A DNA stretch of 64,000 bases from Macrostomum lignano (GCA_002269645.1 NIVC01001149.1:186001-250000); one strand, 5' to 3'. Shown: positions 25,971 to 60,852, counted from the stretch's first letter. The notes: generated by a model from the sequence alone, not told the origin. Numbers and translations: made by a program.

Positions 25971-26121
25971 ATATTTTCGATACATATCGGCTTTATTTCT
26001 CTGGTTTCATACTATTGATATATACAGTATTGGCTGTATTCCCACAGTTATGTATTTTTCGATACATATCGGCTTTATTTCTCTAATTTCATTTTTGCCA
26101 CAATTCCTGCCGTCTCAACTG

Positions 26122-29100
26122 ATGAACGAGTCCATCATTGTGATTGACTCAGACGATGATGAACAGCAGCAGCAGCAGGAGCGGCGGCGGCAAAAACAAA
26201 GAGCTCTCGTCACGGCTTCAATTGGAGCAATGAAAGCCAGGTCAGCAGTTGCCATGCCTCAGCAGCCACAGCCTCCTCAGCAGCCTCATCAGCAGAACTA
26301 TGCCGGCAGTCTGCAAAGCGTCAAGCTTGGCGGCTTCGTGCCGCTCAACTGCACCGTGACAGGCGGCGGCGCTGGCACAGCAGCAGCAGCGGCTGCAGCG
26401 AGATCGCGCCGATTCAAGGAGACGCCGCGAGGACGAAAGTCCACAGGCGGCCTGTGCGTCAGCTCCGCCCTGCGGCTGGGCGGCTCGCCGTCTGGAGTGC
26501 AGAAGCAGCCGCAGCAACAGACGCAGCAGCAACAGCAGTTGTCTCCGATTGTCAAGCAGGCCCTCCTAACCAACGGCCGGGTCAGCCACTCCTACCCGCC
26601 GCCAGCCCCGGCAGCTACGAAGCCGCTGCCTCCAGCCGCAACCTACGACTCGGTGATCGAGAATGAGAACAACTACATTGACTACACAGAGTATTTCTAC
26701 TGCCGAGAGCTGGACCCGCTGGAGACTGTGGTCACCCCACCTGCCGCTGGTCCGTTTGCCTACAACTGCTGCGTCTGCTCCGCCCAGCTGCCTTGCAGCG
26801 ATGCGGCCGCCAAGCACATTCTTGAGCACCTGTTCAGCGCCAGGATTCACCGCGCCAACCTCACCGCGCACACGCGATGTCACCGCTGCCTGCGCAGCTT
26901 CCAAACCCCCGCCCGCATGCAGCGGCACCTCAGCCGCGCCCACCCCGACTGCCTGGACGAATCGGCGCTGGTCTGTCGAATCTGCGAGCTGCACTTCGAC
27001 ACGGACTCGAAGCTGGCCGACCACCTGGCTGGCACACATCCGCCCAGGGACATGCCCTACCGGTGCGAGCTGTGCGCCCACCGCAGCTCCAGCCACGCTG
27101 ATCTAATCCAGCATTTTTACTCCTTCCACGCCTGCAGCGGCGAGCTGCTCTGCTACTTCTGCTTGAAGGTTTTTCGGTTTCCAAATGGTTGGTGACTTTT
27201 GGTTGGCATTTTTTCTATCGATCTATAGAACTAATGCATTTTAGGATACTTCCTTTTTTAGCTTCTGTCTGTTATGATTTCCCTATGAACTTTACTGTAC
27301 AGGGGATATTTATCTCATGGTAGTATTCAGTTGGGATATTTATGCCACAGTAGTATTCTTATAGGATACATTTATCCCACAGTAGTATTCTTGTGAGATG
27401 CGTTTATCCCACAGTAGTATTCAGATAGGATATTTATCCCACAGTAGTATTCAGTTGGGATATTTATCTCACAGTAGTATTCAGTTGGGATATTTATCCC
27501 ACAGTAGTATTCAGTTGGGATATTTATCCCACAATAGTATTCAGTTGGGATATTTATCCCACAGTAGTATTCAGTTGGGATATTTATCCCACAGTAGTAT
27601 TCAGTTGGGATATTTATCCCACAGTAGTATTCAGTTGGGATATTTATCCCACAGTAGTATTCAGATAGGATATTTATCCCACAGTAGTATTCAGTTGGGA
27701 TATTTATCTCACAGTAGTATTCAGATAAGATATTTATCCCACAGTAGTATTCAGTTGGGATATTTATCCCACAGTAGTATTCAGTTGGGATATTTATCCC
27801 ACAGTAGTATTCAGTTGGGATATTTATCCCACAGTAGTATTCAGTTGGGATATTTATCCCACAGTAGTATTCAGTTGGGATATTTATCTCACAGTAGTAT
27901 TCAGTTGGGATATTTATCCCACATTAGTATTCAGTTGGGATATTTATCCCACAATAGTGTTCAGATAGGATATTTATCTCACAGTAGTATTCAGTTGGGA
28001 TATTTATCCCACAGTTGTATTCAGTTGGGATATTTATCCCACAGTTGTATTCAGTTGGGATATTTATCCCACAATAGTGTTCAGATAGGATATTTATCGT
28101 AATCTTTAAATCCCTCCGCAGGCACTGGCAGCTCCCCACCAGCGCAGTCTCTCAGCCCCTACTACTCTCACCTGCGAGCCCACCTGGCGGACAGTTGCTC
28201 AGATCCCCATGGCAACGCCAATTCAAACGGCTGCCCAAAGTGCAAGCTGCACTTTCTCAGCCGGCAAAGCCTGAAGCAGCACCTGGACTCGGCGCACATT
28301 GGCAAATGCTTCACCGTGGCAGAGGTGTCCCCAGTACCGTCTGGCGCGACTGCAGCGGCAGCCTCTGCAGCGGTGACTGCAGCCGCGGGCACCCGCAGTC
28401 TGAACGCTGCACCAGCCTCCAGGCTATGCGGCCTGGCCCAGCTGAAATTCAAAGTGAAGCGGCAGGAGACCTGCCTGGAATGCCTGCAGCCTATGAGCCT
28501 GCCCGGTGAGCTATCGAAGCCGAGCTTTGCTGCCTACTCATGTCATAAGTAGTATAAGTCTAGATGATAAAATTCTTAAAATAGTTTTTAAGGCAGATTT
28601 GTCCAGTGGTTGGAGCGTCAGACTCACGACTGAAAGGTCGGGGGTTCGATTCCCGATCCCACTAGAACAATATGTGTCCTTGACCAAGACCAAGACACTC
28701 TACATTGCTTCAGTTCACCCAGCTGTAAAATTGGTGCCAGCATTAGCTGAGGTGATTGAAGGTGTGTGTGGCGACCCCCAGTCCTTGGAATGAACAGCCG
28801 TACCTTGCAATAGCTGCGGCTGAGCTGTCGGTTGCACATCTGGCCCAATTCGGGCAGGTGTAATCTATTATTTTTTTCGGAAAGCTACAAGCTTTTAACC
28901 TACTTGAAGTAGTTAAATTTTCTAAAAAGCCATGGGCAACTAACTTTTATGCATTTTGTCTACTTGCAGTAGCATTATTGCTCAACAGAAAAGCTGGCTA
29001 ATTAACAGTATTTGAATTATAATTCTCAGGCCACTACCAGCGCCAGCACCTGTGCCCTGCATGCCGCTATGTTACCTGCTGCGGTGAGGCCTTCGCCAGG

Positions 29101-35285: not shown

Positions 35286-38200
35286 ATGCTATTGTTGGAT
35301 TTCAGCGAACTGCTTGAGAAGAAGCTGAGCGGAGAGCGATGGAGTGAAGAGGACGTGAAGCTGCTTGTGCGGCTGGTGAGCTCAGGCCGGCTGTCCGGAC
35401 AGCAAATCGGAGCAGTGCTCATGCTCATCTTCACCAAAGGCATGGACGCGGAGGAGATTGTTCAACTCACCTCGGCCATGACTGCTTCGGGGGAGACTCT
35501 GTCCTGGCCTGACAGCCTGAGACCATTGGTGCGTTTTCTGTCTGATGTTCTGACCCTAAACTACTCGAGTGTATGCAAATCACTGCAATCCAAAAGCTCA
35601 ATTGCGCTTTCTGTTATTTATGGTAGCTACATGTACTCCTCATATTCATTCTTGTTCACCAAATGCGGAATACGCTTGTAAAACAAAACGATAGGACGAT
35701 TGTAAAATAGATATAAAATTAAAATTTTTCTTTTAAACTTAGGGGTTCCGTTCCGGTGATTTTGAATGGACATGAATTATGACTATAGAGTTACATTATT
35801 TTTACTCCGCTAACACGCTACCTGCCAATTTGAATGCCCCCGGCAGGTGGTGGACAAGCACAGCACCGGAGGCGTCGGCGACATGGTCAGCCCACCGATG
35901 GTGGCATCACTGACCGCCCTCGGCCTCAAGCTGCCGATGATCTCCGGCCGGTCGCTCGGCCATACTGGTGGCACCATCGACAAGATGGAGTCGATTCCCG
36001 GCTTCAACGCCAGCCTGACAGCCGAGCAGATGCGCGGCGCCGTCATGTCGGACGTTGGTGGCTTCATCGCCGGCCAGACCGAGGCGATGGTGCCCGCCGA
36101 CCGCGTGCTGTACGCGGCCAGGTCGGAGACCGCCACCATCCGGTCCGTGCCGCTCATCACCAGCTCAATCCTGAGCAAGAAGGCCGCCGAGGGCATCTCC
36201 GCCCTGGTGATGGACGTGAAGTTCGGCCGCGCCGCCTTCATGACCACTTTTGAGGAGGCTCGGATCCTGGCCGAGTCCATTGTGAGATCATATTTGCGTC
36301 AATCGTTACATGTAGTTTAGGTGAAACACGTACATGTACAATAATTGCACTGCGGATTTTGTCTCTTTCATTAGTAAGGCTGCACAAGGTCGTCAACGAT
36401 TCCTCCCAAAAGGTGTGCTTTTGAGCAACGATTTTGAGTCTGTTGAAGTTCTCGTCCATTTGCAGCCTGAACGACCGATGGAAACTAATATACTTGCCAA
36501 AAAGTTAGCCTCAAATCTTTTTAACAATACGATCGTTCGACATCCGTGACGGCGCAACAAAAATTGTCAGTGGACAGACTTCCTACCCTTTGGCAGTTCA
36601 CTTGTGAGCATGAACTGTTCTACACTGAAAGAACTCTCTCATCCAACTGCTTAAGGAGCAAACCGGACGCGGCTACGGCATGAAAGTGATAGTGTTCATC
36701 ACCGAGATGGAGCGGCCGCTCGCCCGCTGCATCGGCAACGCCGTCGAGGTGGCCGAAGCTCTGCAGGTGCTGAATGGAGGCGACGCGGCCTCGGCCGGCC
36801 TGCGCGAGCTGGTGGCGCGCCAAAGCGGCTGCCTGCTGCGCCTGACCGGCAAAGTCGCAACGGACGAGGCCGGTGCTGCGGCGGTGCGCAACTCTTGGAG
36901 CGACGGCTCGGCGCTGAAGGCGATGCGGCGCATCCTGGTGAACCAGGGCGTCTCCGAGGCGCTGGCCGACAAGCTGTGCGAGCGGGGCCAGTTCAGCGTG
37001 CAGGAGTACCTGAGCCGGATGGGCCGGGAGCCGCTGTCTGTTACTCAGCTGAGCAGTCCCGCTTCCGGTGAGTGCATTGTACTCAGGGGAGCTCAAATCC
37101 GCTAAGTCACTAAGTTTAGCAATTTGTCAAGAGTGATCCAGCTGCGCCTTGAGTAGTTCATCAACAGGTTGGTGATCAGGATAACCGTAAAATATATAGT
37201 AAAAGTACAACTTAAGGACTTTTGGACCATCATTGGCCTGGAGGTTTGTTGTGCGGTTTCACAGTCACGAAGGCCGGCCCCAAGGCGCAGAGAGTCTACA
37301 AAACATGCCTGATGATTAGAAAGTCAGAGCCGATGTACACCCTTAGTGAGCGTGTGTATGAACGCGTGCTTTGTACATTATGTGCTCATGGGGTGGCGGA
37401 ATGGACAGAATTGTCATGACCTATCGTTGTGGGACGATGTCGCCAAAAGGTGTAGCGCCACCTCAAATTTATAATGGGGCCCTTCCCCTCCCCAGTGATA
37501 GATCCTGGCTACACTCTTGATGCTAAAACGAGTCACTTCATGCTCATGCACGCTCAAGGCTCCTTCAAATGAATTTTAATCACCAAAGACATTGTTTACT
37601 AAGTTCACCCCAGGAGGCCCTACATATAGTTCGTAGGATTGCCTTCGAATGAAGCCTACTACAAGAGTTATAGGTGTTCACAAGGTGGACTTTAAAGGCA
37701 AATTAACTTGATACCACAAATGAAAGCAACATTCAGAACTCGAAGAGGCAAAAGCATTCATGCCTTATGACGGCACACGCTCACACAGGGTGAACAGCGG
37801 CATGGGAGGCCATGACTGTGAGTCGTCGTGATTCAGGAGTAAGACGCGTTTACCGCTGAGGCACTCTGCCTCATAACCACATGCTAGGATAAATGCTACA
37901 TGCTACGAATGCCCTTTGATTGCAGGTTTCGTGTCGGACATTGACGCCCTGTCTCTGGCCAAGATCTGCCATCAGCTCAGCAGGCCGGAGCGTCTCGGTG
38001 GCAAGCTGGATCATTCAACCGGACTCGAGCTGCTGGTTGTCAAGGGTGACGCTGTTAAACAGGGTACGTTTTTGTCTGAGCTAAACTGTAGTAGGAAGCT
38101 TCCAAATTTTAGACCGAGTCAGTGTAGGTAAAAATCAATTTCATTAAAGCCGCTGAATCAATTTACGAAGAATTTTTCTAATTTTTAAAAAAAATACTTT

Positions 38201-39641: not shown

Positions 39642-41376
39642 ATGGCTAGCAATTTTCATGAGGATGCCGTTGACTTTCTTGACGACTCACCGGCTTTGAC
39701 CAGTGATAACAGCGCCAGCGAGTACGCAAGCATTGATGGCGAGGTGGATGAAGAAGATGGCCAGAGTGACGTGGAAGGCTCTCAGGTAGAAGAAGCTTTG
39801 ATTGAAAATGGATGGAATTTCGTTCAGGAGGGCGAAGACTCGCGTCTCCGGGATGCGCCAGAATTCCTCGGAGTGCCCGGTCTGAACCCGGATCTATTAG
39901 CCCAAGCGCCGGAAAACACAATGACTCGGATCGAATTCTTCCTCTAGCACTTTATTACCTCTGATCTGGTGTCTGCCATTCGATTTTGGACCAATGCTCG
40001 AGCTGATTTCGAGCTCCAAAACATTGCAACTGAGGCTGATGGACCTCTTCCCCCCTTAATATCATCTTGGAGACAATGCACCGAAAACGAAGTGAGGAAA
40101 TGTCTCGCCATTGTCCTGTACATGGGTCTAGTGAAGAAGCCCGAATTGCACATGTATTGGTCGACTGGCGATTTCTACGGTGGTGAATATTTTCAAAAAG
40201 AGCATTGCCTCGGAAGGGATCGGTTCATTCAGATCTTGTCATTCCTCCGATTCTACGACTGCACCGCAGTAAATAATCACCAGGATTCCCTGAAGAAAAT
40301 CAGGCCATTTTTAGACATTGCGCGATGGTATTTGCCAAGCCAACTACTGCCCGAATCAGGACGTTTCAGTAGATGAAGAGTTGGTCATGTACAAAGGCAG
40401 ACTCATTTTCCGACAGTTCATGCCCAACAAGCGCGCCAGGTTCGGCATAAAGGTCTACTGTCTCACAGAGGCTTCCACCGGATTTCTGTGGAACTTCCGT
40501 GTGCATGCTGTCAAGCAGGACAACGACAGGTTTGGAGAAGGAGTGAACTGCGGGAATTTATCTTTCAGTGAAAAGATTGTTGTCGAGCTAAGCAAGGACT
40601 TGCTGGGCTTGGACTACCGGATCTACTGTGACAGCTGGTTCACGTCGCTTCGCCTAGCTCAGTTTCTGCTCGAACGTAATACCATGCTGACAGGAACCGT
40701 GAGAGTCGACCGAGGCATCCCCAACGAGCTAAAGGTGCTGGCACTGCAACCCATAAGTCACTCTCACATGCGCCGAGACGATGTTCTTGCCGTCAAGCTC
40801 GTTGACAGAAAGGCCAGTGGTCGCAAAACTGTCTACCTTTTGGACACCCACGGCGTCGCTGGAAGCACGGAAGTGAGGCGAGTAATTCGAGGCGGCGTGG
40901 TGGAGACAGTTTTGAAGCCCAACTCATTGCTGCAGTACAACAAGAGTATGGGAGGCGTCGATCGCCTTGACGCAGCGCTACAACCCTACAGTGCAGGAAG
41001 AAGGACGCACAGGTGGCACCAGAAGCTCGGGTTTCATATTTTGCTTCAGTTGGTGCGCAATGCTTGGATTTGTTACTGCCATTCTGGCAACTGCATGAAG
41101 TTCTTAGACTTCTTGGAGGCCACGATCCGCCTTCTGATGGAGCAGACGGGTCGGGGAAAGCGGCAGAACACATCGAAGCGTCGAGCTGCCTCGCTGCATA
41201 CCCCATCCAAACTACCACCGACAGAGGCCAATATGAGACCGACTAAGCGGTGCAGAGTCTGCTATGGAAACGGCTCGGCCAAGCGAACTGTCTACGTGTG
41301 CGATGCTTGCCCTGGAGAGCCTGGACTTTGCGCAGCTCCTTGCTTTCAGAGCTGGCACACTGCCGCGGGGAACTGA
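39642..41376 (+). pseudogene. piggyBac-family (PGBD-like) transposase with one in-frame TAG and one frameshift
   Basis: Acidic N-terminus; catalytic-type motifs VSVDEE, YCDSWFTS and GGVDRLD; KRARFGIKVY; C-terminal Cys-rich domain RCRVC...CDAC...LC..PCFQSWH. Lesions are TAG at 39945-39947 and a +1 shift near 40326. TTAA/TIR ends were not found. Confidence 0.92.
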
Positions 41377-42766: not shown

Positions 42767-45566
42767 TCAGCTAATTTCCAACATTAGACGAATACTTCTC
42801 AGCATTGGTCTACTGATCGTGAATCCCACATAGTCAGCTGCGTAAAGCCACTGCATATTTCTCGAACTGTTCCATCTGCTGCCGATCTCCGACAAGTTAA
42901 AGTAGCCGTTTGGATTGACGTAGGTGCAGCTGTCGTACCACCATCCAGCGTTACTATTCTGTCTTGAGCAGCGAGAATTCGACCCCGAGTCCATTGTTGA
43001 GAAGGTCAGATTGTTGTTGTAGGAGAATGCGTCCTTAGAGGTGTTGGAGCTGCCGGGCAGGTAACCGCTGACACTCAGCCTGTACCGCGTGCTGGCGCTG
43101 CCAACCGAGAAGTGAGAGTACTCGCACACGTACAGCTTGCCGTTCTGATGGTTGCGAGCTTCCATTCGAAACAGGCGCGGCGTTGCGCCACTCAGACTGT
43201 GGATCTTCTGCAGGCCTGCAGTTGTATTAGTTGGTGATGTTGCGGCCCGAAAAGCATCCGACATTATTTTTTTTTATTAGAGGCAGGGGGGTTGTGTGCA
43301 CCCTGGCGCACTTTAAGCGACATGGGCACACAACCGGCGAGAGGCATTACTGCCCATTCCGCCGACTCCCCTGAGCAGGCATACAAGCGCGTGGATACGT
43401 ACGAAGGCACGCACTCACACAGGAGTGTACAGCGGCCCTAATTTTATATTATCGTTAGGCATGTACACTTCACTGCGCCTTGGGGGTTGGCTCTCAAGGC
43501 CGTTAATTGGACGAGCAGAGCAAAGCCGAGATTCCAATTCAAGTGCAATGACTGCACTTGGAATCGAGCCTGGGTCGCTGGCACACCAGAGCAGCTGCGC
43601 TACCGCTGGGCTACGGCCCCCCTAAGCATCCGACATACTCGAAATACAAGACAATACATGTAGCTGTGTGCTGGGAGTTCCCCACTTTCTAAGCGATTCA
43701 CTTAGCTGTGAAGAGATTGACTAGCTACTTGATCCAACAATATTTTGCTAATAAAACTTTGAATCGACGTAAGAAATGGTCAGAAGACGTATGAGCATTA
43801 TGGAAAATCAAAGAGCTAAAATGGCAAAAGTCTTGCAATGTCATAAATGCCTTGCGTAAGAGGGCGAGCCTTTGTGTGAATATAATCCAAAGCATAAGAA
43901 ACTGTGGGACAGAATCAGCCAGCTGCTAGAAGTTGATGAAACAGTGAATTCCCACCTGTCTCAGTGGTGTTGGATAGTTGCCTGCAGCGTTAGCAGCAGC
44001 ACCTCCAATACTGTTTTGGTTGTACAGGACTTATTGCATATGCTTCCAACTTCTTGCTATTGATCTTGTGATGGAAACTGTTGGGTGACTACACTCCTAG
44101 CTCATAAAAAAAGTATTACAGAAGAATACAACTCCCTAAACTGAAGGACTCACTTGATGTTTTTCGATAGCATAACTAATTCAGAAGCTGAAAGGACCAA
44201 TTTGAATTTTGGATGCTTGATAAACTTGCAAACTTAAGGAGCGTTCACTGCGTCATCGAATAAAATGATCACACATTTTGTGCAAAATGACGACAGAATT
44301 TTTATGTCATGCGAGCAGGCAGAATAGTGAACTGCTGCTAAAAAGCGCTCAGAAATTATATACTAATAACGCATTCGCAAAAACCGAAACCGAAATTTCA
44401 AATTTCAAATTTCTTAATTTCAATGTCATAATATCATCAAACCTGAGTTCTCGGCACTGCAATGATGTAGTGCAGAGCAGCCGCAGCTGAGCTGATTTCC
44501 AGTCTGCCGACACCATCAGCGGACCGACCTCGAACCGAGCACTCAACGAAGAGCTCACCGATCTCTCAGCAGTCCACAGCCGCATGAAATCGACCGAGAG
44601 AGGCGACAAGTCGGCCAACTGAGTCCTCACATCATCGCGTGTGGCCTCATCTTGCAGTACCAGATCCAGCTTCAGGTAGTGCATGTCTCGGCTGTAGTCA
44701 TACCTGACTGACTCGCTGCTCAAGCTGGAGATGTTGTGGCACAGAAGAGGCTCGATGAGGAAGTGACCCTTCATGTCGAGTCTCTGGTGCACTCGGGCAG
44801 AGCAGTTCTCGAGATTGACGGTGCGGCTGAATTTCAGCTGTCGGCATGTCATCAGGGGTGAGAATCTTTGTGCGTTTATCTCTGAGTCGAGGAGGATGTC
44901 ATTCTGCAGCCGGAGGCGACTCTGAACATCGTGGCAGGAGCCGTTTGCAATGATTGAAGCTGTTAGCTTCACTTTTTCAAGAGCTTCTCGGGGTGAATTT
45001 CTAAGGCCAGCACTGTTCTTCTGACTGTGCGCGCATTGCATTGGAAGAATGTTTTCAATTAACCATGTCTTTGGAACTCGACTTGAATTGTCCTCCGAGC
45101 TGATGTTTTTCAATCTGAGAGTGGCGACTGGCTCATCCGGAGTCCACAGGACGCCCAAAGCCCGAATCTATGAGCGGGTGTCGGCTGAGACGCTGATGTT
45201 GGTCACCGTGGCGAAGCTCACAGACCTCGGTGACAGATGCCGCAGTTGACGCTGAGCCTCTGCGAGCATCCCAGCGTCCCGCATCAATACAGGAACGCTG
45301 AAGTACATCTGCTGGGTGATGAAGTCGAATCGGGGAACAATGCCTCTCAGGCTGTCCGTCACGCACATGAGTGGCTCGACTGCCAAGTGCGGACCGTCGC
45401 TCGCTCCCGTGTCGTGCACGAACAGCGCGCAGCCGTTCACGCTGAGCTGCGCCACGAAGCGGAGCCTTGGAGAGTCAGCGGGGGCGCACTGGGAGACCTG
45501 GCCGGCTGCCAGCGAGCAGAGCAGCAGAGCCAGCAAAGTTTTGAAAAGCAAATTTAGTTGCTCCAT
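42767..45566 (-). pseudogene. FReD-cluster paralogue 1 (signal peptide + tandem unknown domain + FReD), apparently disrupted
   Basis: One frame from 45566 to 44443 is homologous to paralogues 2 and 3 but has a TAG at 45170-45168. The donor is at 44442. The FReD C-terminal exon is 43215-42767 (FSTMD...GWWYDSCTYVNPNG). The exon for the first half of the FReD was not found. Confidence 0.7.
43265..43623 (-). mobile_element. tRNA-derived SINE (family B) with poly(A) tail and 13-bp TSD
   Basis: The minus strand begins GGGGGCCGTAGCCCAGCGG...GGCTCGATTCC (A and B boxes) and ends AATAAAAAAAAAATA. It is flanked by AAGCATCCGACAT at 43252-43264 and 43624-43636. Confidence 0.9.
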
Positions 45567-45974
45567 TATCTTTGTTTGTGAGAATTGAAGACTCTACAAT
45601 CTGCTTTGTGTTTAAAGATGTGTAGAATTTTACAAACGCGTTTTAAAATAGGTTGAATTGCACTTCATCTTTGCTGTTAGCATTCTTTTATTTATTATAG
45701 TCTGCAATTTAGAAATGCGAGACAAAGGGGAACACTATAGAAAGTTTTGAATAAATAAATGCTCTATAATTAGGAAGAGACGCTTTAAAAACATATCTAT
45801 TTTTAATCTGCAAGAGCTTCTAATTGCTTATTCAGATACAGGATGCTACTGCAGAATTTCAGCGCGATCAAGTTCAGGGGTTATTTTTATACTATCAAGT
45901 GAGCTTCGGAAGTCTCGAAAGTAAACCCTGGAGGCCGGGTCGAGCTATAGTTGATAAAAGGTGAAGGAGAACTC

Positions 45975-46175
45975 TGTTTACAGTGCTTACAGTGTTTACA
46001 GTGCTTACAGTGCTTCCAGTGCTTACAGTGCTTCCAGTGCTTACAGTGCTTCCAGTGCTTACAGTGCTTACAGTGCTTACAGTGCTTACAGTGCTTACAG
46101 TGCTTCCAGTGCTTACAGTGCTTACAGTGCTTACAGTGCTTACAGTGCTTACAGTGCTTACAGTGCTTACAGTGC
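45975..46175. repeat. 9-bp microsatellite (cagtgctta)n
   Basis: About 22 tandem units between FReD paralogues 1 and 2. Confidence 0.95.
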
Positions 46176-46888
46176 TAGCAGAGACTTTGAGGTTGCCCTT
46201 AGCTTCGCAATTCAACAACAGCTTCGAACCTAACTGCTACATGTACCTGCATGTACTGACAGTGACGTATATCAAACTACAATTCATTGTCAGAGGATAA
46301 AAACAAGGCTAAATATTGTAAAATTTATTTACTATATGGCTAACTAATTTTTTATGAGAACTTTGTTGACAAATTAACTCAGAATTATCTTTATTCAATT
46401 ATCGGACTTTCTAAATCCAATAGACTCAAAAGGCTACAGATCTTTATACTTAAAGACGCGATTCACAAAATCTATGTGATGCAACAGACATGGCTCTTAA
46501 TTGTCTCTCTGTGCTCAAGCAGACTTTATCAGACTGAGTCTTCTAAGCATTTGGACGAGTTTGACGCTTTTCAGATCGGTAATTGAAAAAGCCTCACTCA
46601 ATTGTTAGCACAGGACGCAGCAGTAGTGCAACTCGAGTATAGACATTATTCAATTTTATTTAATCAATTTCTATTTATCAAAAAAAGACTTTTAAAAGAC
46701 TTCTTAAAGTACAATGACCAATTAAATTTGCTATTTTGAATCAGGCAAAAAAGAGATGACGATTACTCAGTTAATCATAGAAAAATTTTGTATATTAACA
46801 ATGCAGATTAGATTAGATGCCTTCAGATTAAGAGATATTTAGACATTATTGCTGAGCATTTGTGAGAATTCATTTGTTTCTTTTCCTG

Positions 46889-48942
46889 TCAAATCTGGAG
46901 CAGCAGTAGTACTTGGCGAAGTGCCAGCCACCGGCGACGCGAAAACCAAGACATGTACGCATCGTCCGAAGTCTCACGGGTGGAAAAAATCCCGTTTGGG
47001 TTGAAGTGCATGCAGTTGTTGAACCACCAGCCACCTTTGCCGTAGCCGTCGGAGCACGACTCACTGCGCCTGTCGTTGTCTGCGTCCATGGTGGAAAACC
47101 GGGACCGATTGCTGTGCTCCATGGCGTCCCAGCTGACGGTGGACCTCTCCGGCAGCATCTCTCGGTACGTCATCCGGTACCTGGAGCTGGCGTCGCCCAC
47201 CTGGAATCCCGCGTACTCCGCATGCAACTCAGAGCCGTTCCACAGCCTCATCTCCACTCTGAGGGTGGCGCCACCTGTGCTTAGCAGACTAATTGCAGAT
47301 AGACCTGAAAGTGCAACAAAAGCTACTGGAACTACAGCTTAGGCCTTATACAATTTCAGGATGGATAAATTTACTAAAATAACAAAAAACGAACCAATCC
47401 AAAAGTCGGTGTCGTGGCCAAAGCCAGTCTCGTATTCCGCCCACGTTCGCTGGAAGCTGACGCTTCCACTCACCCTCTGCTGGATGGTCACGAACCATCT
47501 GCCGTCAGGTAAACTGCGAAACGTCTCGAAGGAAACAATTTTGGATCGCAATAGGCTGGGAATATTGCGGCAGGAGTTGTAGGTTGAGCAGGAAGGCGAA
47601 CTGCCAATCGTTTTCATTCTCCAAGACGAAAGATGCTTATGGGACATCAATAAGCACTGATTCGCCACCAGAGAGGATGTCCGCCATTTTAGATGTCGCC
47701 ACAAGTCAACAGGCTCCGACAGAGCAGAAAATCTAAAACAAGAGGCAATTTTCCTGTCATTCAATATGGACTAAAAAATTGCATTTAACTGCAGCGCCAA
47801 CCTGGCAGCGCCACACTGGTTTAAGGACGAGCAGTACAGCCGCAGCTGAGCGGACCTCCAGTTTGCCGACACCATTAGCGGACCGACCTCGAACCGGGCA
47901 CTCAACGAAGAGCTCACCGATCTCTCAGCAGTCCACAGCCGCATGAACTCCACTGAGAGAGGCGAAAAATCAGCCAGTTTAGTTCTCACAGTCTGAAGTG
48001 ATGCTTCATCCTGCACTAAAAGGTTCAGCTTGAGATAATATTTGCCGCGGCTGAAGTCATATCTGATTGACTCGCTGCTCAAGCTGGAGATGTTGTAGCA
48101 CAGCAGAGGCTCGATAAGGAAGTGGCCCTTGATGTCGAGTCTCTGGTGCACTCGAACAGAGCAGTTCTCCAGACTGATGGAACGAATGAATCTCAGTTGT
48201 CGACATGAAGGCAGGGGACAGTACCTTAATCTGTACTCACTGGGGTCAAAGAAGCTGTGATTTTGAGTCGATACTCGGTACTGGTAGGTCTGGTAGGTTC
48301 CGTTGAGAAAAAGCTTCGTCGATAAGCGAATTCGCTGAAGGGATTCGACCGATGATAGCTGCAGTTCTGATCTGAGCAGGATGGTTCAGGTTTGTTCGAA
48401 TCTTCACTATAATGATATGTAAATGAGCCAACTTAATTTTTCAAAACTTACGAGAGCTCATATGCACTTCTGTCCATATCTGTTTCGATTCTTAGATCTC
48501 CAACGGACTCATGTGGACTCCAGATAAAAGCAATAGAACGAACAGTGGAGTTAGCATCTGTGGAAGCATTGACTTCTGACACAGCCGCAAAGGTCACAGA
48601 CTTTGGTGATAGATGTTGCAGCTGACGCTGAGCTTCTGCCAGCATCCCATCATCCGTCATCAACACAGGAATGCTCACGTACATCTGCTGGGTGATTAGG
48701 TCCACTTTCGGACTCAGAGACTTTAAGCTTCGCGTCACGCACATGAGCGGCTCGACTGCCAAGTGCGGACCGTCGCTCGCTCCCGTGTCGTGCACGAACA
48801 GCGCGCAGCCGTTCACGCTGAGCTGCGCCACGAAGCGGAGCCGTAGAGAAGAGGCAGCGGGAGCGCACTGGGAGACCTGGCCGCTGACTCCCAGATAGAA
48901 GTACAGCAGTGACAGTGCTGCATTTTTGAGTGACATTTTCAT
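46889..48942 (-). CDS. FReD-cluster paralogue 2: secreted ~604-aa protein with two copies of an unrecognised domain and a fibrinogen C-terminal domain
   Basis: Exons 48942-48452, 48371-47802, 47732-47395 and 47304-46889 total 1815 nt with GT..AG ends and consistent phases. Signal peptide [21 protein letters not shown]. FReD motifs [21 protein letters not shown]...[14 protein letters not shown] and [13 protein letters not shown]. Confidence 0.85.
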
Positions 48943-50009
48943 TGAAGTGCCTTTCCTCAAGGTTTCTGTGCCTGCTATTCGAACATAGTTGTCTTCTAAA
49001 TTTACTAATAAATAATATCTTGCCGTTGAAATTTTTTAATTTATAGTGCTAATTATATACCAGCGAATGCCAGATCAAGATTGTGTTGTCAAGTCTTAGT
49101 CAAATAAGTTTTGCTGTTTTCGTAATTGCCTGATACACCTTCTTTCACGAGTAAAATTTAAGGGCAAATATACAAAAAAATGGACTGAAATTTGATATTT
49201 TCAGCCTTTTGCTTAGGTGAATTGGTTATTTGTGACTTGCCTTGTCTGTCACTGCTTGTTGCGCACGCGCGTCTTAGAGTCACATGATGTTTTCCAATTC
49301 GCAAGTTCATTTTGGTGCAAAGCTTCGTTCGTTTCAAATTTAGCGTCTAAAGCTGTAGCGGCTTCCTCACCGTATCTGATGTTTACTCGCGTGCTTCTCT
49401 TGCAAGTTGCAGAAAGCATCTGCACCGGCTATTTGTGGGCTTGAAGCCAGTTTTCCGCTCGAAGTGGGAATCATCGATTTCCAAAACTACTTCATATACA
49501 TGTACAAACGCATTTTTCTGGACTTGATGACCTTCTAATCAAAATTGCAAGTTTTATAAAGCTGTTTGTTTAACACAGTGGTTTTTTGAAAGTTCACGAT
49601 AGCAATCCGGCCCTCTTATTTGTGTCTTTTCTCCCCACTCCTCTCTCTTCTGTCATATGTCATCTCTTTCTTCTTCACTTTCCCCATTCTCTTCTCTTTT
49701 CTCGCTCATCTCGTGCGCAGCAATGAGCTGGATTTTTATCTGGCCCTTGAGATAAAAATTTTTGCCACTCCCTGGTTTAACGCATCCTTGCGTTGAAAAC
49801 CTAAACAAAGATACAAATAAACTTTTTAATGTAGTGAAAAACAGGAAACAGCTTAATCTTAATATTGCAGCTCTGTATTGAAAACGTTAAATCTGAGAAC
49901 AGCGATTAAACAATCGCTTCCTTTATTTTATTGCGTCAAGTTTGCGCGGAAGTTTAATCATATCGACATGTCCCGATTTGAACTTGTTCGTGTCGTGTTA
50001 AGCATCAGA

Positions 50010-52245
50010 TCATAACTGCACCATCAGCCGAACAAGCCGAATGGACATCCATCTGTCAGAGTGCCACAGCATGTACTTCAGGTTTATTGTCGGGCTGGTC
50101 GGGAACAGCCCATTTGGATTGAAATGGTAGCAGCTATTGAACCACCAGCCACCTCCGCCATATGCATTGGAGCAGGACTTCCTACGGTCTCTGTCATTGT
50201 CCACATTGATGGTAGAAAACTGCATGCCTTTGTGGTACTGCATTGCATCGTGTTTGGCGTTAGACTTGTCCCTCAGCATCTCACGGTACGTCATCCGATA
50301 CATGGAGCCGACGCCTTCAACTGTAAAGTTCGAGTACTCCGCGTACCACTCGGTGCCGTTCCACAGCTTCATCTCCACTCGAAGGGTGGCGCCGCCGTCG
50401 GTAAGCGAGGCAATTCTGTTCAGACCTGCAATGTCAATGAAGGGCGAATTCACGTTTGTTAATATTTGATTTGCTTTTTATGGGCTGGTGCGATTTGAAA
50501 TGTTTAATAGTATTTAGAAGTATTGAAAGCACTGACAATATTTGAACGCTGAATTTCGCGTGTAGTTTCATTTTTACACTGGTAGCCCCTGGGACTCTTG
50601 CCGCGGCTAAGCCAAGATAAGTCTGACAAAAGATTCTCAAAAGCAACTCAGATTTTATCATACAGAAACAATAAAGAAAAACTTTTTAATGTTGAGACAT
50701 CGTACCGATCCAGAAGTTGTTTTCATTCCCGAATCCGCGGATGTACGACGCCAGAGTGCGCCGAAAACTTTCCTCGGCCGAGACTCTCTGCTGTATAATG
50801 AAAAACCATCTGCCATCTGCGAGCCTTTTTAGCTTGCCAAAACTCAGGTCTCCACTCCGAGCAAGACTGCGAAGATAGGCGCAGCTTGCGGAGCGGCTGC
50901 AACTGATGGCGTCGGTGGAGCTTTCCGTCTTCCCAGAGGAGACGGTCGAGTCCGACTTGAAGAGGCAATCCGAATTAACAATTGACGTTGGATGCCAATT
51001 GATATGATACCAAAAAGCAAATGGATCTTTTGTCATTACATTGGACCTAAAATGTGTTGTAGTTTTATGGTTTTTTGTTTTAAAATACTAAAAAATCCGG
51101 ACATAATACTATAGAGGCAATAATTACTTCAGATTGGTGCACTGTTTTATACTCCTGCAGTACAGCCGCAGCTGAGCGAACTTCCAGTCTGCCGACACCA
51201 TCAGCGGACCGACCTCGAACCGAGAGCTCAACAAAGAGCTCACCGATCTCTCAACAGCCCACAGCCGCATAAACTCGACTGAGCGAGGCGACAATTCGGC
51301 CAGCTGTGTCCTCACGGCATCGAGTGTGGTCTCATCTTGCAGCACGAGATCCAGCTTCAGGTAGTGCATGTTTCTGCCGTAGTCATATTCAACTGGTCCG
51401 TATGTTGACTTATCGACGCTCCAGAGTAGAGGCTCAATATAATAGGCACCCCTAGAATCGAGTCGCTGAAATACTCGAACTTGACGGTTTCTGTGGTGCA
51501 TTAAATGTACAAATTTAATGTCTGAGCAAGTTTCCAATTCGTATCTGGCACTTAAGAGAGACAGTTCCGTGAATCCGCGGTTTCGCGCCACTGGGCGCAG
51601 AGTGACTTGTCGAAATTTGCGATTTGATAAAATGGTGGCCGTGAGTTGCACCTGGTCTAAGGCGTCGGTAGGCGACGTTTCTCGTCTAGAAATTGATTAG
51701 TTTAATATTGGTTTTGTCAAAAATTGCCTAAAATATTTTTCTACCAAAAAGGACTCTAAATACACTCACGTCATCATCATCAGAGCCGCTTCTGTGTTAT
51801 TTATTCCTATTTTTAGAACACCAGCCGAGTGATTTGAACTCCACTCGAACCCAATAACGCTAGACTTGGTTGCCAAAGCTCCTATATTAGTGACAGTAGC
51901 GAAGCGAACGGGCTTTAGAGAAACGTTTCGCAGCTGCAGCCCAGCTTGGGCAAGCATGTGGGTATCCCATAGAAGCACCGGGACTCGGATGTACAAAATC
52001 TGCGAAATCAGATCGAGTTTCAAAGGCTGCTTTTCGATGGCACCAGTGACGCACATGATAGGCTCGATCTCCAGTGCATGCTCTCCCGAGTCGTATACAA
52101 CCAGCGGACAGCCGCTCACGTTGAGCTGGGTCACAAAGCGCGGCTTGGATGAGGCAGTTGGAGCTCTCTGAGGAAGCTGAGCAGCTACCAGCGAGCAGAA
52201 AATTAGAAGCAGTGCAGCCACTGCCACTTGGGCTGCGGAACTCAT
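50010..52245 (-). CDS. FReD-cluster paralogue 3: secreted ~596-aa protein with the same architecture
   Basis: Exons 52245-51770, 51685-51128, 51046-50706 and 50425-50010 total 1791 nt with the same intron phases (2,2,1) as paralogue 2. Signal peptide MSSAAQVAVAALLLIFCSLVAA. FReD motifs FWIGL, FSTINVDND and GGWWFNSCYHFNPNG. Confidence 0.85.
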
Positions 52246-54718: not shown

Positions 54719-57700
54719 ATGAAGCTGAAAGCCAAGCGGTCCGAGCCGCTGCAGCTGCTTCTGTGCCAGCTGCTCACGGGTGAGTCTGAATGGAAATGGT
54801 GCCACCTTGATGGAGACTCACTCACTGCTCACTCACACTCCTTTCAGCTGTGGCCTCCGCCGTAGACCCCAGCGCCGTCACCAGAGGCTTCTACCATCGG
54901 GTGACCAGCGGCTTCATCGGCATCGGCAGCTACGTGAGCAGCGAGCTGCTCAACGAGACGGGTGTTCGATCAGATGTTCTCTGCCTGTGGAAGTGCTGGG
55001 CAACGTCATGCGTTGTCGCAGTCGTCAAGGAAGCCGCGATCCTCGAATGCCAGGTGCTCGTCATCAACAATGCGAGCGAGCCGGGCTTGAGCAGCAGCAG
55101 CTTTGTTGCCAGGGAGATTCGGCTTGAGGACGGCGTGCAGATCTGGAAGGCTGGCGACTTTGAGCAGCAGCTGCTCAGAGGCACCGACGCCGCGCGCCCA
55201 CTCGGTGAGTTTGTGAAATTGGCTGATGGAGTTCATGATTCAGCATTCATGCAAACGCACCCGCATCATCTGATGCTTACTCAAAGCTCAGTTTTGAAGA
55301 AAGCTGTTTCAGCCTTAATTCCTATCGAATCCAACCCCGAATATCCATCTCACAGCGTACCTGGATTCTAAGAACGTGACTCACAAGCGGGTCCACATTC
55401 CCAACAACTCGGTGAAGATTATCGCCGCCTTTCTTCAGCACCAGTCGGCTGTCTCATCGCTCGTTGGCTGCGTTGACAAGTGCAGCGAGGTGCCGGACTG
55501 TCGCGGGATTGTGTTCAACTCCAGCAACTGCTCTCTGCTCACCGACTACCCGCTGTGCCGCTGGTTCGAGCAGCCTCCGAACAGCTCTGAGCTGGCCGTC
55601 TATGTGAGTGTTGGGAAAGGAAGCTTTTTGGCGTCACGTCACTGCTGAGTAAAGCATGTCTGCATTGATGACGATCGAGTTCCGGATGTTCCGGGTTCGG
55701 TTTCTGTGCCAGCGAGCAGTTTCTCTGAGCAGCTCAGCGGCTCGCGCGCCACGACCCTTGGGCCTTGGTTCGATTCTGTGTGCGGCCGCATTAATTTGGC
55801 CTTGTTCTCAGAAATTAGCTGAGGGGTCTTTTCTCTGATTTCCACACATGCCGGCCGACACTTCACAGACACATGCCGGCCGACACTTCACAGACACATG
55901 CGTGCCGACACTTCACAGACACATGCCGGCCGACACTTCACAGACACATGCGTGCCGACACTTCACAGACACATGCCGGCCGACACTTCACAGACACATG
56001 CGTGCCGACACTTCACAGACACATGCCGGCCGACACTTCACAGACACATGCGTGCCGACACTTCACAGACACATGCCGGCCGACACTTCACAGACACATG
56101 CGTGCCGACACTTCACAGACACATGCCGGCCGACATTTCACAGACACATGCCGGCCGACATTTCACAGACACATGCGTGACAGTTAGAAATTTAACAAGC
56201 CGCTTTTCATCCTGGACGTGTGCACGCGTGTTTGAGTGGCGTTCCTGCGTACACCATCTCTCAGTTTGAATGAATGTACGAGCTAAGGAGTCAGCAGTGT
56301 AACTGTCATACCAAGGACGAATTCAGTAGGACGGGAAACCTCGTTTCTTGGAATAATTTTGAAGGCAGGTTTTTCAAAAAAATTCAGTGCGGAGACAGAA
56401 AGTTTTCATTTCTTAGCAAAAAAATTGTTATTGCTTTAGATAGGAGGCAGATCCAGTGTTCATCTTTTGATATGCTGTTATTGCTGTTTTGTTTTTTTGT
56501 TTTTTCGCAATGTTGTTGGGGCTTCTGTCTCGGGCAAACTCGGTTCACTAAAGTTGCAGGAACGCATTCCACAGCCGGCGTCCGGCCTCCGGCTCTCGAC
56601 AGAGGTCACTCAGGCTGGTCACGCCGAGTTGTCGCCGTACTCGGTTCAGGGCAGGGCAGCCTTGTTATTGCTGTCTTATTGCTCTATCGATATTCATAAA
56701 GCTTTTCGTTCAGAAAAATAGTTTTCTATGCCATTTTTCCACGTAAATTTGCACGTGTCTTGTGCCTAAAAACCATTAAAATGGCACAGCTCGGCTCTTT
56801 GGTTTTATTAGTGTATTTTGTTATTCTTATCTGACTGTTTAAATACGGAGTATGCTTAACAGAGATTATAAAATCGATTCAGAAAACCAAAAATTGGAGC
56901 TGTGCCAAGCATTTTTATGATTTTTAGGTACAGGAAATGCACATAGAATAAGAAGAGAGCATAGAATCCTATTTTTTTAACGAAAAGCTTCAGAATATCG
57001 ATAGAGCAACAAGAAAGACACAAAATATCAAAAGATGAACACTGGATCTGCCTCCTAACAAAAACGAAAACATTTTTTTCTGAAAAACCTGCTTTCAAAA
57101 ATTTTTCAGGAATCGAGGTTTCCCGTCCTTTTACTTGAGTCGTCCTGGAGTCATACATTTAGCTGCCTCAACGCTGCGGGACGTCCGATGCTACCGAAAG
57201 TGTTTGTTCAAGGATTCCACAAGTCTTATGCCAATAGTTATGTGAAAGTTGCTAGCAGTTATAAATGCTTTTGTTGCATGAGTTTAATTTAAACAAGGCT
57301 GTAAAAGTATTTTGATTGCTTTCTGGATCAACAGCTAACATCTCTGACAGTCCACATCGATTTCTATCACAAGAAAAATACTTTAAAGATTTCACGAAAC
57401 CGCAAACGCAGGAGTTCTACACTGTGGGCACTCAGCAGTGCTTCCAGACCGTCAACCTGCGAGTGTCGGACGCGCTGAGCTTCGACCGGCTCTGGGCCGA
57501 GTACAAGACCGGCTTCGGCACTTATCACGGCAACTACTTTACTGGTGAGTCACTTGGGGCTCTTTTACTTGAGTTTCTGGTCGTATGCGCACTGTGTTTT
57601 TCATAGTAGAAAGTAAGTATTATTTATTTTTTAACTTATTGAGATCATTGGTAAATTTTGAATACTTTCGGAATTCAGAAATGTGATATGTACTTGAAAA

Positions 57701-59437
57701 AACGTTTTTTTGAAAATTGAATTTATCTAATTTATAAGAAACTTTGAATTTTTTAGCAACTATTACATATTCTACTTCAGCACTCAAAGCTACTCGTAAA
57801 AGTACACTCCGCCAAGCTACTCTAAAAGTATTCTGCATGTTCAAATCTTTTAGATTTCTCTTCCCATATTCAGTGTTGGGCACCGTTAATGAAAATATTA
57901 ACTTCCGTTAATAGCAAAAGCGTTAGCGTTAAAACAAAAAAATCTTAACTTTTTAACTCCTAATTTCGTTAAGCTAACTGAAAGTTAACTGATAATCGTT
58001 AATCCGTTAAAGTTAACACAGAAAATACGGAAATCTTGCACGTTTTTTCCAAAACAGACTTCGTATTGCACGTCTTTGCTATTCCATCTTTTTAGCGAAA
58101 CACGGAGGTCATCTAAGCGATTTGAAAGCTAAAAAAGTAATATATAATCATTTTAAAAACTTGCATGCATAATACTACTAAAAGTAAAGCATATGGTAAA
58201 AAAGTAACTTATTTTATTTGAAACTTAAAAGCTAATAACGAGAAATTCATAATTAAATACGCATAGAAGGTTGTTTCAGTACCATTAGCAGGCGCAGCAG
58301 AAAGTTGCGAAAGATTGGGACAGAAGTGAATCAAAGCGATCGATGCTCACGCGCAAGAAATCAAGTTTCACACTATTTTAATTCATTATTTTAAAGTTTA
58401 TTTGTAAGAAGTTGTTAATTACATGTACGTCTGTATGATCATCGTCATAGATAAAGAGATTATATTTAGGCATATAGGTAAGCTCAAATACGTTCGTAAT
58501 GTTTAAACTTCTTGTAAGACTTCTATTTTTCGTTCCTTCTTTGCGTCTTTGGTCATTGACATAGACACTACCGTTAACGATGAATTTATCGTTAATTCAC
58601 AAATTTTTTAACGCTAATTCGTTAATCCGTTAGTTCAAAAAAATCTTAACGACAGTCCGTTAACGTTAATGAAAAATCTTAACGCTTATTAACGCTTACT
58701 AACGGATTAACGCTTATTAACGGACTGGTGCCCAACACTGCCCATATTAAAATAGGATATTGGAATATTAAAAGCTCTACTTATCTGATGAAGATGAGGC
58801 AAGCGATAACATGAAATATTCTCGTTTGTTAAAGACCAAATGTGTTTGCCTTGTGCAGCTCAAGTAGCTGTGTAAAAGCTTTGTAAAGTAAAAGATAAAT
58901 GGGGACAAACAAGTGTTGCTTATTAATTCTAATGGGAAATTCTAAAGTAAGCCATGTGAAATTTTCTCACAAACAGGCCTCGAGTGGCTGCACGCCCGGA
59001 CCAGCGCTCAGCCCAGCAGCAACCGGTTCCGCGTCGACCTGCTGTACTGGAACGACACCTTCATCTACGCCTACTACCTGAACGTGCTCATTCTTGCCGA
59101 GAGCACCAACTACACGGTGTCTGAATTCACGTTTGAGCCTGCTGGGGGTCTTCGCCAGAACTTGTTCGTCGGCAAGAACATCCAGTTTCAGACTCGAGAT
59201 CGTGGCTTGAGTACCTGCATTAATGGACAGAACTGTGCCCAAAGGTACCAGCCTCAGTGGCACAAATGCTGCCACAACTCCGGTCCATTCGGCAAGTACT
59301 TCAACTACCCGACAGCGCTGAATGTGCCAGCTGCAGACCGAGCCAAGGGCATCGTTTGGGCTTCAAATGCTCCAACAAACATCACTGACGGATGGTACTA
59401 CAGCTTCAAGCAGCTGGAGATTCTCATGCTGACCTGA
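54719..59437 (+). CDS. Secreted PAN/apple-like + divergent FReD protein, 5 exons, ~419 aa (terminal exon 5a isoform)
   Basis: Exons 54719-54779 (signal MKLKAKRSEPLQLLLCQLLTA), 54848-55204, 55356-55603, 57412-57544 and 58977-59437 total 1260 nt and are phase-compatible. PAN-like Cys patterns CLWKCWATSC and CVDKCSEVPDCRGIVFNSSNCSL. FReD SFDRLWAEYKTGFG...YFTGLEWLH. Confidence 0.8.
55845..56180. repeat. 25-bp minisatellite with 50-bp alternation (cacatgccggccgacacttcacaga / cacatgcgtgccgacacttcacaga)
   Basis: About 13 units in intron 3 of the PAN-FReD gene. Confidence 0.92.
56310..57155. mobile_element. Long-TIR foldback element in PAN-FReD intron 3
   Basis: ggacgggaaacctcg...taggaggcagatccagtgttcatcttttgatat...gctctatcgatattc is mirrored in reverse complement at ~56960-57155. 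The left arm carries an extra ~180-bp insert. Confidence 0.75.
57871..58740. mobile_element. Non-autonomous hAT-type transposon (870 bp)
   Basis: Perfect 14-bp TIR CAGTGTTGGGCACC...GGTGCCCAACACTG with an 8-bp TSD CCCATATT (57863-57870 and 58741-58748) and subterminal (C)GTTAA repeats. Confidence 0.93.
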
Positions 59438-60207: not shown

Positions 60208-60388
60208 CAGCCGAATCGAAGCAGCTCTTAAGGCTATTGTCCCGTCAAATTACTATTTAGAACATGGAGATAAAAAATTTGCGATGTTTTTATATCTTCC
60301 TTTGCTGTCTGCTGGATGTGACAATTTTCCTGTAGCAAGTTAGCTCATTTATAAGCGAATTTCTTACCTGCAAATCTCGTAACGCCAG

Positions 60389-60852
60389 GCCTGGAGTGGC
60401 TGCACGCCCGGGCCAGCGCTCAGCCCAGCAGCAACCGGTTCCGCGTCGACCTGCTGTACTGGAACGACACCTTCATTTACGCCTACTACCTGAACGTGCT
60501 CATTCTGGCCGAGAGCACCAACTACACAATTTCTGATCACACCTACGCACCTGCTGGAGGCCTTAAAGACTGCCTGTTTGCGTGGGGGGAAGTGGGGAAG
60601 CAGTTTGTCACTCGAGATCGCGGATGGAGCGACTGCCCACACAACTGCGCAGTTGCATACGAGCAGCCTCAGTGGCACAATTGCTGCCACAACTCCGGTC
60701 CATTCGGCAGGTACTTCAACTACCCGACAGCCCTGAATGTACCAGCTGCAGACCGGGCCAAGGGCATCGTTTGGGCTTCAAATGCTCCAAATAACATCAC
60801 TGACGGGTTCTTCTACAGCTTCAAGCAGCTGGAGATTCTCATGCTCACCTGA
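60389..60852 (+). CDS. Duplicated terminal FReD exon (5b) of the PAN-FReD gene: alternative last exon or detached duplicate
   Basis: Open 464-nt exon with an AG acceptor at 60387-60388 in the same phase as 5a (G|GC CTG GAG TGG). It ends at the same LEILMLT* and has no lesions. Confidence 0.75.

Follow-up and report, generated by a model that had tools for sequence, protein, structure and literature searches.

What kind of protein is encoded by the tandem genes for fibrinogen-related domains (FReDs) in the flatworm Macrostomum lignano, and what is the long region that precedes the FReD in these proteins? The question is raised by a locus that occupies 42.6-52.4 kb on the minus strand of a 64,000-nucleotide stretch of DNA (GCA_002269645.1 NIVC01001149.1:186001-250000; hereafter, the window), which is of eukaryotic character. 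Reading frames and exon assembly delineate three head-to-tail paralogues in this locus, which we denote A, B and C. FReDs and C-type lectins are the main workhorses of non-self recognition in invertebrates, and it is the N-terminal part of such a lectin that decides its valency, reach and partners; the known solutions are collagen stalks, coiled coils, immunoglobulin (Ig) domains and membrane anchors. We propose, with a probability of roughly 0.6, that B and C encode secreted modular lectin-like proteins that combine a leader, two tandem copies of a new alpha/beta module and a C-terminal FReD, and that would act as soluble recognition or agglutinating lectins.

An earlier note on this DNA had described three paralogues with start codons at 45566 (A), 48942 (B) and 52245 (C), two of which were taken to be intact, with four exons, identical intron phases and a C-terminal FReD, and all of these features were recovered at the respective minus-strand positions, with the start of a single exon corrected. 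The stop codons end at 42767, 46889 and 50010, respectively. Gene B (48942-46889) encodes 604 amino acids after the correction and gene C (52245-50010) encodes 596; in both intact genes, all introns are GT-AG, with phases 2/2/1 and lengths of 69-280 nucleotides, the short introns being 69-90 nucleotides long (Table 1). The correction concerns exon 2 of B, which most likely begins at 48371 rather than at 48173: judging from the sequence, the upstream acceptor (ccatcctgctcag) is phase-compatible, has a good pyrimidine tract and leaves an intron 1 of 80 nucleotides, whereas the model with the acceptor at 48173 (538 amino acids) was rejected because the frame is open to 48388 and the acceptor at 48371 fits better. 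The revised exon adds 66 amino acids that are homologous to the same segment in A and C, and the score of module copy 1 of B against the hidden Markov model (HMM) described below rises from 123 to 137. The three genes detect one another in tblastn comparisons with E values from 1e-25 to 1e-115; their introns and flanks are no longer alignable, so the duplications are old.

At their C-terminus, B and C carry a genuine FReD. The Pfam profile PF00147 (Fibrinogen_C) matches B with E 2e-35 (123 bits) and C with E 2e-32 (113 bits), against a gathering cut-off of 22, and the exon 4 remnant of A is still recognized (Table 1). As for the N-terminal A subdomain and its disulfide, the match begins at position 40-41 of the 221 positions of the profile; two cysteines lie upstream of it (SC..x..SC), and the cysteine of the usual 'CDM' is absent. 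Gene B retains an intact calcium motif, FSTMDADND, together with C...GGWWFNNC. Among the sequences in the PDB, the closest relatives of the FReD of B are fibrinogen alphaE C (1fzd, E 1.9e-26), angiopoietin-like 2 and 6 (ANGPTL2/ANGPTL6, E 1e-23) and the ficolins (ficolin-1 foremost; ficolin-1/-2/-3, E 1e-22 to 1e-20), along with angiopoietins and tenascins, and the FSTxDxDxD and C...GGWW..C..N.NG motifs of B and of C align with those of 1fzd and ANGPTL2/6.

The signal peptides of B and C were assigned by visual inspection and hydropathy only, and that of B is no more than moderately hydrophobic. In Kyte-Doolittle plots of B and C with 19-residue windows, no transmembrane-grade segment is present past the N-terminal leader: a value above 1.6 is reached only in the leader of C, and the maximum in B is 1.14. 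The claim of the earlier note that transmembrane, collagen, Ig and coiled-coil segments are all missing is thus upheld for the first three by hydropathy, by the lack of any run of at least five G-X-Y triplets in B or C, and by the Pfam searches of the module detailed below, respectively; a coiled coil is not evident in B or C, a judgement made from the globular model of one module copy (helices of at most 14 residues), with no dedicated predictor run. Neither EGF nor FN3 domains are matched by Pfam in B or C.

So what fills the space between the leader and the FReD? Within the N-terminal region, the first half resembles the second (BLASTP E 7e-13, 29% identity), and an HMM that was iterated over all family proteins collected delimits a repeat unit that spans some 150 positions of the profile and, tail included, some 170 residues (range about 150-175), with six cysteines and the consensus G-C...E-P-L-x-C...S-V-x-F...L-R-L-x-C-x5-C...C. 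Every copy in A, B and C is matched by this HMM with E 1e-33 to 1e-53 (residues 43-183 and 232-380 in B). A, B and C have two copies each, as do the members of eight paralogue clusters (P0002-4, P0010-12, P0017, P0018); P0019 has a single copy, and P0013, P0025 and P0026 have six. The earlier note had recognized some 350 residues of no known family followed by a separate Cys linker; the lack of a known family holds, but the two parts are one thing, namely two tandem six-cysteine modules, the 'Cys linker' being the tail of the second unit.

Across 28 copies of the module, with a mean identity of 24%, the E-P of 'EPLxC' are the only near-invariant residues, and the cysteines, C0 to C5, are distributed in a telling way. 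C1 and C2 are both present in 20 copies and both missing from the other eight, and C3 and C4 are likewise both present (24 copies) or both missing (four), without a single discordant case for either pair; for C0 and C5, the corresponding numbers are 17 with both, four with neither and four discordant. This pattern of co-occurrence argues for a disulfide bond within each of the pairs C1-C2 and C3-C4, and probably also within C0-C5.

The module is not confined to FReD proteins but, as the sequences of its relatives indicate, also carries a C-type lectin head. It precedes a FReD in A, B, C, P0002-4, P0010-12 and P0017-19, and a C-type lectin domain in P0013, P0014, P0025 and P0026; the Pfam Lectin_C matches at the ends of the six-unit proteins have E values of 3.4e-9 and 1.5e-11. 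When P0025 is placed on its genomic locus, the introns after units 2, 3, 4, 5 and 6 are all of phase 2, each of them six residues past Cys C4. Intron 2 of B and C is also of phase 2 and lies four residues past Cys C4 of copy 2, and intron 1, again of phase 2, sits at the corresponding site in copy 1, from which C3 and C4 have been lost in both genes; the offset of two residues between the FReD genes and the lectin gene is no larger than the uncertainty of the alignment. In B and C, exon 2 is thus symmetric (2-2) and consists of the tail of unit n plus the core of unit n+1. In both kinds of gene, the module is used as an exon cassette delimited by phase-2 introns at the same position, and this layout is as expected if the module had spread by tandem exon duplication and by shuffling between FReD and C-type lectin genes.

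When the paralogues are compared by the Nei-Gojobori method, the ratios of nonsynonymous to synonymous substitution rates (dN/dS) lie at 0.20-0.48 in both units and in the FReD, and dS runs from about 0.5 to saturation; these values come from the first model of gene B and cover only the segments common to both models. Such ratios indicate that the module and the FReD head evolved as coding sequences under purifying selection. The core of module copy 2 (44471-44848, 47831-48207 and 51153-51387, minus strand) stands out by 84-89% nucleotide identity among the three paralogues and by the lowest dS (about 0.5), the remainder being near saturation; this conservation could reflect local gene conversion or an extra constraint at the nucleotide level, two causes that are inseparable here.

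How could a protein of this build operate? Each copy of the module would be braced by up to three disulfides (C1-C2, C3-C4 and probably C0-C5), and the module would serve as a rigid extracellular spacer or presentation scaffold that lifts the carbohydrate-binding head from whatever the N-terminus contacts; it may, in addition, provide a second binding surface or a surface for self-association. The FReD head would bind its ligand in the usual calcium-stabilized, ficolin-type way, and the proteins would then function as soluble recognition or agglutinating lectins. A number of facts weigh against this reading. The coiled-coil or collagen element that confers multivalency on most FReD lectins is missing from B and C. 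In the FReD of C, the calcium motif reads FSTINVDND, with N in place of the first D, although C...GGWWFNSC is kept, and copy 2 of the module in C has lost C1 and C2 together. The pairing of the cysteines is derived only from their co-occurrence, and the fold is a prediction from 28 related sequences. The exact splice junctions of B and C in the window are predicted, and for C the databases offer a single model, P0001, which is cut short and has a shifted frame near the junction of exons 2 and 3. Finally, a search of the literature turned up no data on expression, localization, binding or challenge for this family; likewise, nothing describing these genes was found in papers and supplements searched with the gene identifiers and with Macrostomum in combination with fibrinogen(-related) or C-type lectin.

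An immune role is plausible, but the support for it is no stronger than for a function in the matrix, in mucus, in adhesion or in reproduction, and the analysis brought up nothing in favour of the immune locus, or of the effector or oligomerizing N-terminus, that the earlier note had considered. The alternative that survives best, unlikely as we hold it to be, is a non-immune one, in which B and C are components of the matrix, mucus, rhabdite or adhesive secretion, egg shell or seminal fluid, and the FReD mediates contacts between proteins, the part that it plays in angiopoietins, tenascins and fibrinogen-like proteins. It is in line with this possibility that fibrinogen alphaE C, angiopoietin-like 2/6, angiopoietins and tenascins appear beside the ficolins among the best matches of the FReD, and that the dN/dS values of 0.2-0.5 signify purifying rather than diversifying selection. 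Nor is there a large or obviously diversifying array at this locus: only two genes of the tandem array in the window are in working order, and a close paralogue at another place in the genome is solitary, so that no large expansion of the immune type is seen here. Conversely, that the module also occurs under a C-type lectin head suggests that carbohydrate recognition is what the two kinds of protein have in common, and in B both the calcium-site motif and the Cys pair beside the FReD binding pocket are kept; a recognition lectin remains our preferred interpretation. Even if the role turned out to be in mucus, adhesion or reproduction, the domain would still be unannotated and would merit a family entry.

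Comparison with the known FReD proteins brings out what is particular to B and C. The C-terminal FReD, the calcium-site motif and the Cys pair beside the binding pocket are shared with ficolins, tachylectin-5A and FIBCD1; however, ficolins possess a collagen-like region for oligomerization that B and C lack, FIBCD1 has a membrane anchor and a coiled coil, neither of which is seen in B and C, and the N-terminus of tachylectin-5A, likewise without counterpart here, is merely a short stretch with cysteines. In sequence, the flatworm FReD is most similar to fibrinogen alphaE C, the angiopoietin-like proteins and the tenascins, but these proteins, like the angiopoietins and fibrinogen-like proteins, come with coiled-coil or EGF/FN3 N-termini, to which the flatworm N-terminus is unrelated, and they function in clotting, signalling or the matrix.

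The closest parallel in overall build comes from a snail. In the VIgL lectins of Biomphalaria glabrata, which comprise FREPs, CREPs and GREPs, the N-terminal Ig domains are common to all and the lectin heads vary (PMC5433772). Like the flatworm proteins, they are secreted, multi-copy and lineage-specific, with one family of N-terminal modules under a FReD or a C-type lectin head (PMC5433772); the snail Ig module is present in one or two copies per protein, and the flatworm module in one or two copies before the FReD and in six before the C-type lectin. There are differences as well: the snail module belongs to the immunoglobulin superfamily, whereas the flatworm module bears no Ig signature and is a helix-containing alpha/beta domain in its predicted structure, and no galectin-headed flatworm member was seen. 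Because the defining Ig domains are absent from their sequences, the flatworm proteins are not members of the VIgL family, and the resemblance is in build only.

Is the module, then, new? Pfam reports no family on the N-terminal region of the full proteins and none, Ig included, on any of the 28 copies of the module, even at E <= 5, and a profile of the N-terminal region finds nothing better than E 0.4 among the PDB sequences. As the earlier note had suggested, the structure was predicted with AlphaFold and compared with Foldseek. With single module copies from all paralogues as input (28-copy alignment) and unit 2 of C (residues 207-381) as the target, AlphaFold yields a confident model (pLDDT, the predicted local distance difference test score, 93.3; pTM, the predicted template modelling score, 0.85) of a compact, beta-rich alpha/beta domain with the element order b-b-b-b-b-a-b-b-b-b-a-a-b-b and helices of 12-14 residues; a run on full-length C with an 8-sequence alignment reached a pLDDT of 36 and was not used. 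Against 350,542 PDB chains, the best Foldseek E value of this model is 0.012, with template modelling (TM) scores of no more than 0.23, and the alignments to Fab chains (TM about 0.2) are noise. The sole significant structural neighbour comes from the viral model library BFVD and is A0A7S7YF07, an uncharacterized 417-residue protein of Medusavirus stheno T3 (E 6.3e-5, probability 1.0, TM 0.58 over 172 columns); the likeness is one of fold, with 12% identity and no relationship detected at the sequence level, and both structures are predicted. The fold search covered the PDB and predicted viral structures, so 'new fold' is meant relative to solved structures only. The earlier contention that the N-terminus matches no known domain is thus borne out for Pfam, for PDB sequences and for PDB folds.

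The searches also bear on a second alternative, namely, that the module belongs to an extracellular domain family known before, from which it has diverged strongly, and owes its apparent novelty to the limits of the searches. The scope of the fold search just mentioned, the capacity of Foldseek prefilters to miss remote similarity and the viral predicted match (E 6e-5, TM 0.58), which implies that the fold exists outside flatworms, all leave some room for this explanation. We nonetheless consider it improbable, given that none of the 28 copies has a Pfam match, that a model with a pLDDT of 93 finds nothing convincing among solved folds and the profile nothing among their sequences, and that an HMM search of 1.84 billion proteins retrieves only Macrostomum-type proteins.

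The latter search was an exhaustive one, in which HMMER compared a profile of the N-terminal region with 1.84 billion representative proteins at E <= 0.001; the profile is shallow, being built from close paralogues only, and may have missed more distant relatives. It returned 13 clusters, 11 of them from M. lignano. The two others are P0013, from a contig of run SRR30276812, and P0015, from a 1.5-kb Joint Genome Institute (JGI) metagenome contig on which a unit 1 open reading frame (ORF) is followed by a unit 2 ORF. The P0013 contig, 4758 nucleotides long, consists of a single uninterrupted, intron-free and hence transcript-like ORF, and its product is colinear, unit by unit, with P0025 of M. 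lignano at 49% identity over 1449 residues; P0013 is thus an orthologue from another organism, presumably a related flatworm. Two scans of metagenome contigs detected no relatives of the module. The N-terminal half of C is 99% identical to P0001, a UniRef protein of M. lignano, and its remaining matches are all from M. lignano. As far as sequence searches reach, the module is therefore restricted to Macrostomum-type flatworms, in agreement with the lineage-specific architecture envisaged in the earlier note, given that every named cluster is from M. lignano. Four M. lignano fragments that consist of the module, P0007, P0009, P0027 and P0029, have been given misleading names by automatic UniRef annotation (Telomere replication protein EST3, PHM7_ext, SHR-BD, CAP10); proteins of the family are otherwise filed only as 'Fibrinogen C-terminal domain-containing' or 'hypothetical'.

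Are the module and the FReD actually parts of one protein? The BOX15_Mlig gene models at NCBI are derived from RNA sequencing (RNA-seq) assemblies (StringTie, TACO, TBONE, TransDecoder) (PMC5730564), and those of the paralogues P0011 and P0017-P0020 contain units and FReD in one ORF. The outcome that the earlier note had named as fatal to its reading, cDNAs in which the N-terminal exons are not spliced to the FReD exons, is excluded for the family by these RNA-seq-derived models, the junctions of B and C themselves being predicted. In M. lignano, trans-splicing cuts polycistronic precursors (PMC5730564), and the transcript-based models come from paralogues rather than from B and C, yet the notion that the gene models are an artefact, with the module exons and the FReD exons belonging to adjacent separate genes, is highly improbable in the face of an order that is repeated in all three neighbouring genes and in no fewer than eight paralogue clusters (RNA-seq-derived models among them), an intron 2 that splits a copy of the module, an exon 3 that joins the module tail to the start of the FReD in one frame, introns of 69-280 nucleotides with matching phases, and the absence of any stop or start codon between the parts.

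A more far-reaching possibility, which we regard as rather doubtful, is that macrostomids independently built a family of soluble recognition lectins on a fold absent from solved structures, using a phase 2-2 cassette once, twice or six times under FReD or C-type heads, and thereby arrived at a convergent counterpart of the VIgL (FREP/CREP) immunity of snails. If this were the case, a disulfide-braced, exon-shuffled stalk shared by both types of head would be a further solution to the problem of presenting a lectin, found in a tractable, transgenic flatworm model; there would be a new extracellular domain family, possibly with a new fold, and an entry point to the poorly known humoral immunity of flatworms. 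The fold likeness to a giant-virus protein would then hint at an older or horizontally spread origin of the module. The practical value at present is better annotation.

Table 1. Parts of the three FReD paralogues, numbered from the first nucleotide of the window
Feature	Position	Strand	Basis
Gene C exon 1: start codon, signal-peptide-like leader, module copy 1 core	51770..52245	-	GTGAGT donor, phase 2; module HMM match, residues 43-179
Gene C exon 2: module copy 1 tail, then copy 2 core to Cys C4; symmetric phase 2-2	51128..51685	-	gene model, HMM; AlphaFold of residues 207-381 (pLDDT 93.3)
Gene C exon 3: module copy 2 tail (Cys C5), short linker, FReD N-terminal half	50706..51046	-	Pfam Fibrinogen_C on residues 423-594
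Gene C exon 4: FReD C-terminal half (NVDND motif, Cys543/Cys557), stop codon	50010..50425	-	gene model, Pfam
Gene B exon 1: start codon, leader, module copy 1 core	48452..48942	-	GTAAGT donor, phase 2
Gene B exon 2 (start revised to 48371): module copy 1 tail, then copy 2 core	47802..48371	-	acceptor, frame, homology, HMM
Gene B exon 3: module copy 2 tail, linker, FReD N-terminal half	47395..47732	-	gene model, Pfam, PDB sequence alignment
Gene B exon 4: FReD C-terminal half (DADND calcium-site motif, Cys pair around GGWWF), stop codon	46889..47304	-	gene model, Pfam
Gene A: leader plus both module copies in a single frame, interrupted by TAG at 45170-45168	44443..45566	-	reading frames, tblastn
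Gene A: expected exon 3 stretch; tRNA-like, SINE-looking head near 43540-43620	43216..44442	-	no FReD-coding similarity by tblastn; unique within the window
Gene A exon 4 remnant: diverged FReD C-terminal half, calcium motif decayed to DSGSN	42767..43215	-	Pfam Fibrinogen_C E 8.5e-19 (68.7 bits)

Judging from its sequence, gene A is a pseudogene, a decayed copy: its frame is broken by an in-frame TAG, exon 3 is undetectable by tblastn anywhere between 44442 and 43216, and a rescue of the gene by skipping exon 3 was rejected, since exon 4 does not continue the frame of exon 2 when spliced directly to it. Exon 3 is present in the intact close paralogue (L003) elsewhere in the genome, which is 92.5% identical to A at the nucleotide level in module copy 1 and is solitary within +/-10 kb. 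The tRNA-like head of the stretch that replaces exon 3 (minus strand) contains box A/B-looking motifs, as in a short interspersed nuclear element (SINE); it was rejected as a tRNA gene, ARAGORN calling no tRNA. At 39969-41376 on the plus strand, 1.4 kb from the 3' end of A, there are frames of a piggyBac-type transposase (DDE_Tnp_1_7, E 2e-37, and a transposase zinc finger); the coding sequence is split across two frames, and the element is probably decayed.

A second, far more divergent FReD gene lies on the plus strand (57316-57603, 58974-59437, 60386-60852). Its exon for the N-terminal half has a GTGAGT donor of phase 1, with the intron at the same position as in B and C, and downstream of it the terminal exon is present twice, in versions that are 83.8% identical over 476 nucleotides and each have their own AG acceptor; to judge from the sequence, alternative use of the two 3' exons could exchange the ligand-binding subdomain, or one of them could be a stranded duplicate. 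A PAN/apple domain ORF (55319-55645, plus strand; PAN_1, E 4.7e-5) is located 1.7 kb upstream of this gene.

Elsewhere in the window, exons of a chromatin-remodelling ATPase of the ISWI/SNF2 family extend over about 7780-15982 on the minus strand, with some 2.3 kb of low-complexity minisatellite (11.5-13.8 kb) between them. Translations alone suggest thymidine-phosphorylase-type exons at 35286-37105 (plus strand), a glutamine-rich C2H2 zinc-finger-like ORF at 26050-27195 (plus strand) and a retroelement RNase H-like fragment at 21035-21499 (minus strand). Minisatellites that are open in several frames are unusually dense (5.7-8.2, 25.5-26.0, 27.4-28.1, 30.8-31.9, 32.3-32.8, 45.9-46.3, 55.8-56.2 and 61.9-62.6 kb), and one such array sits in the intergenic spacer between A and B.

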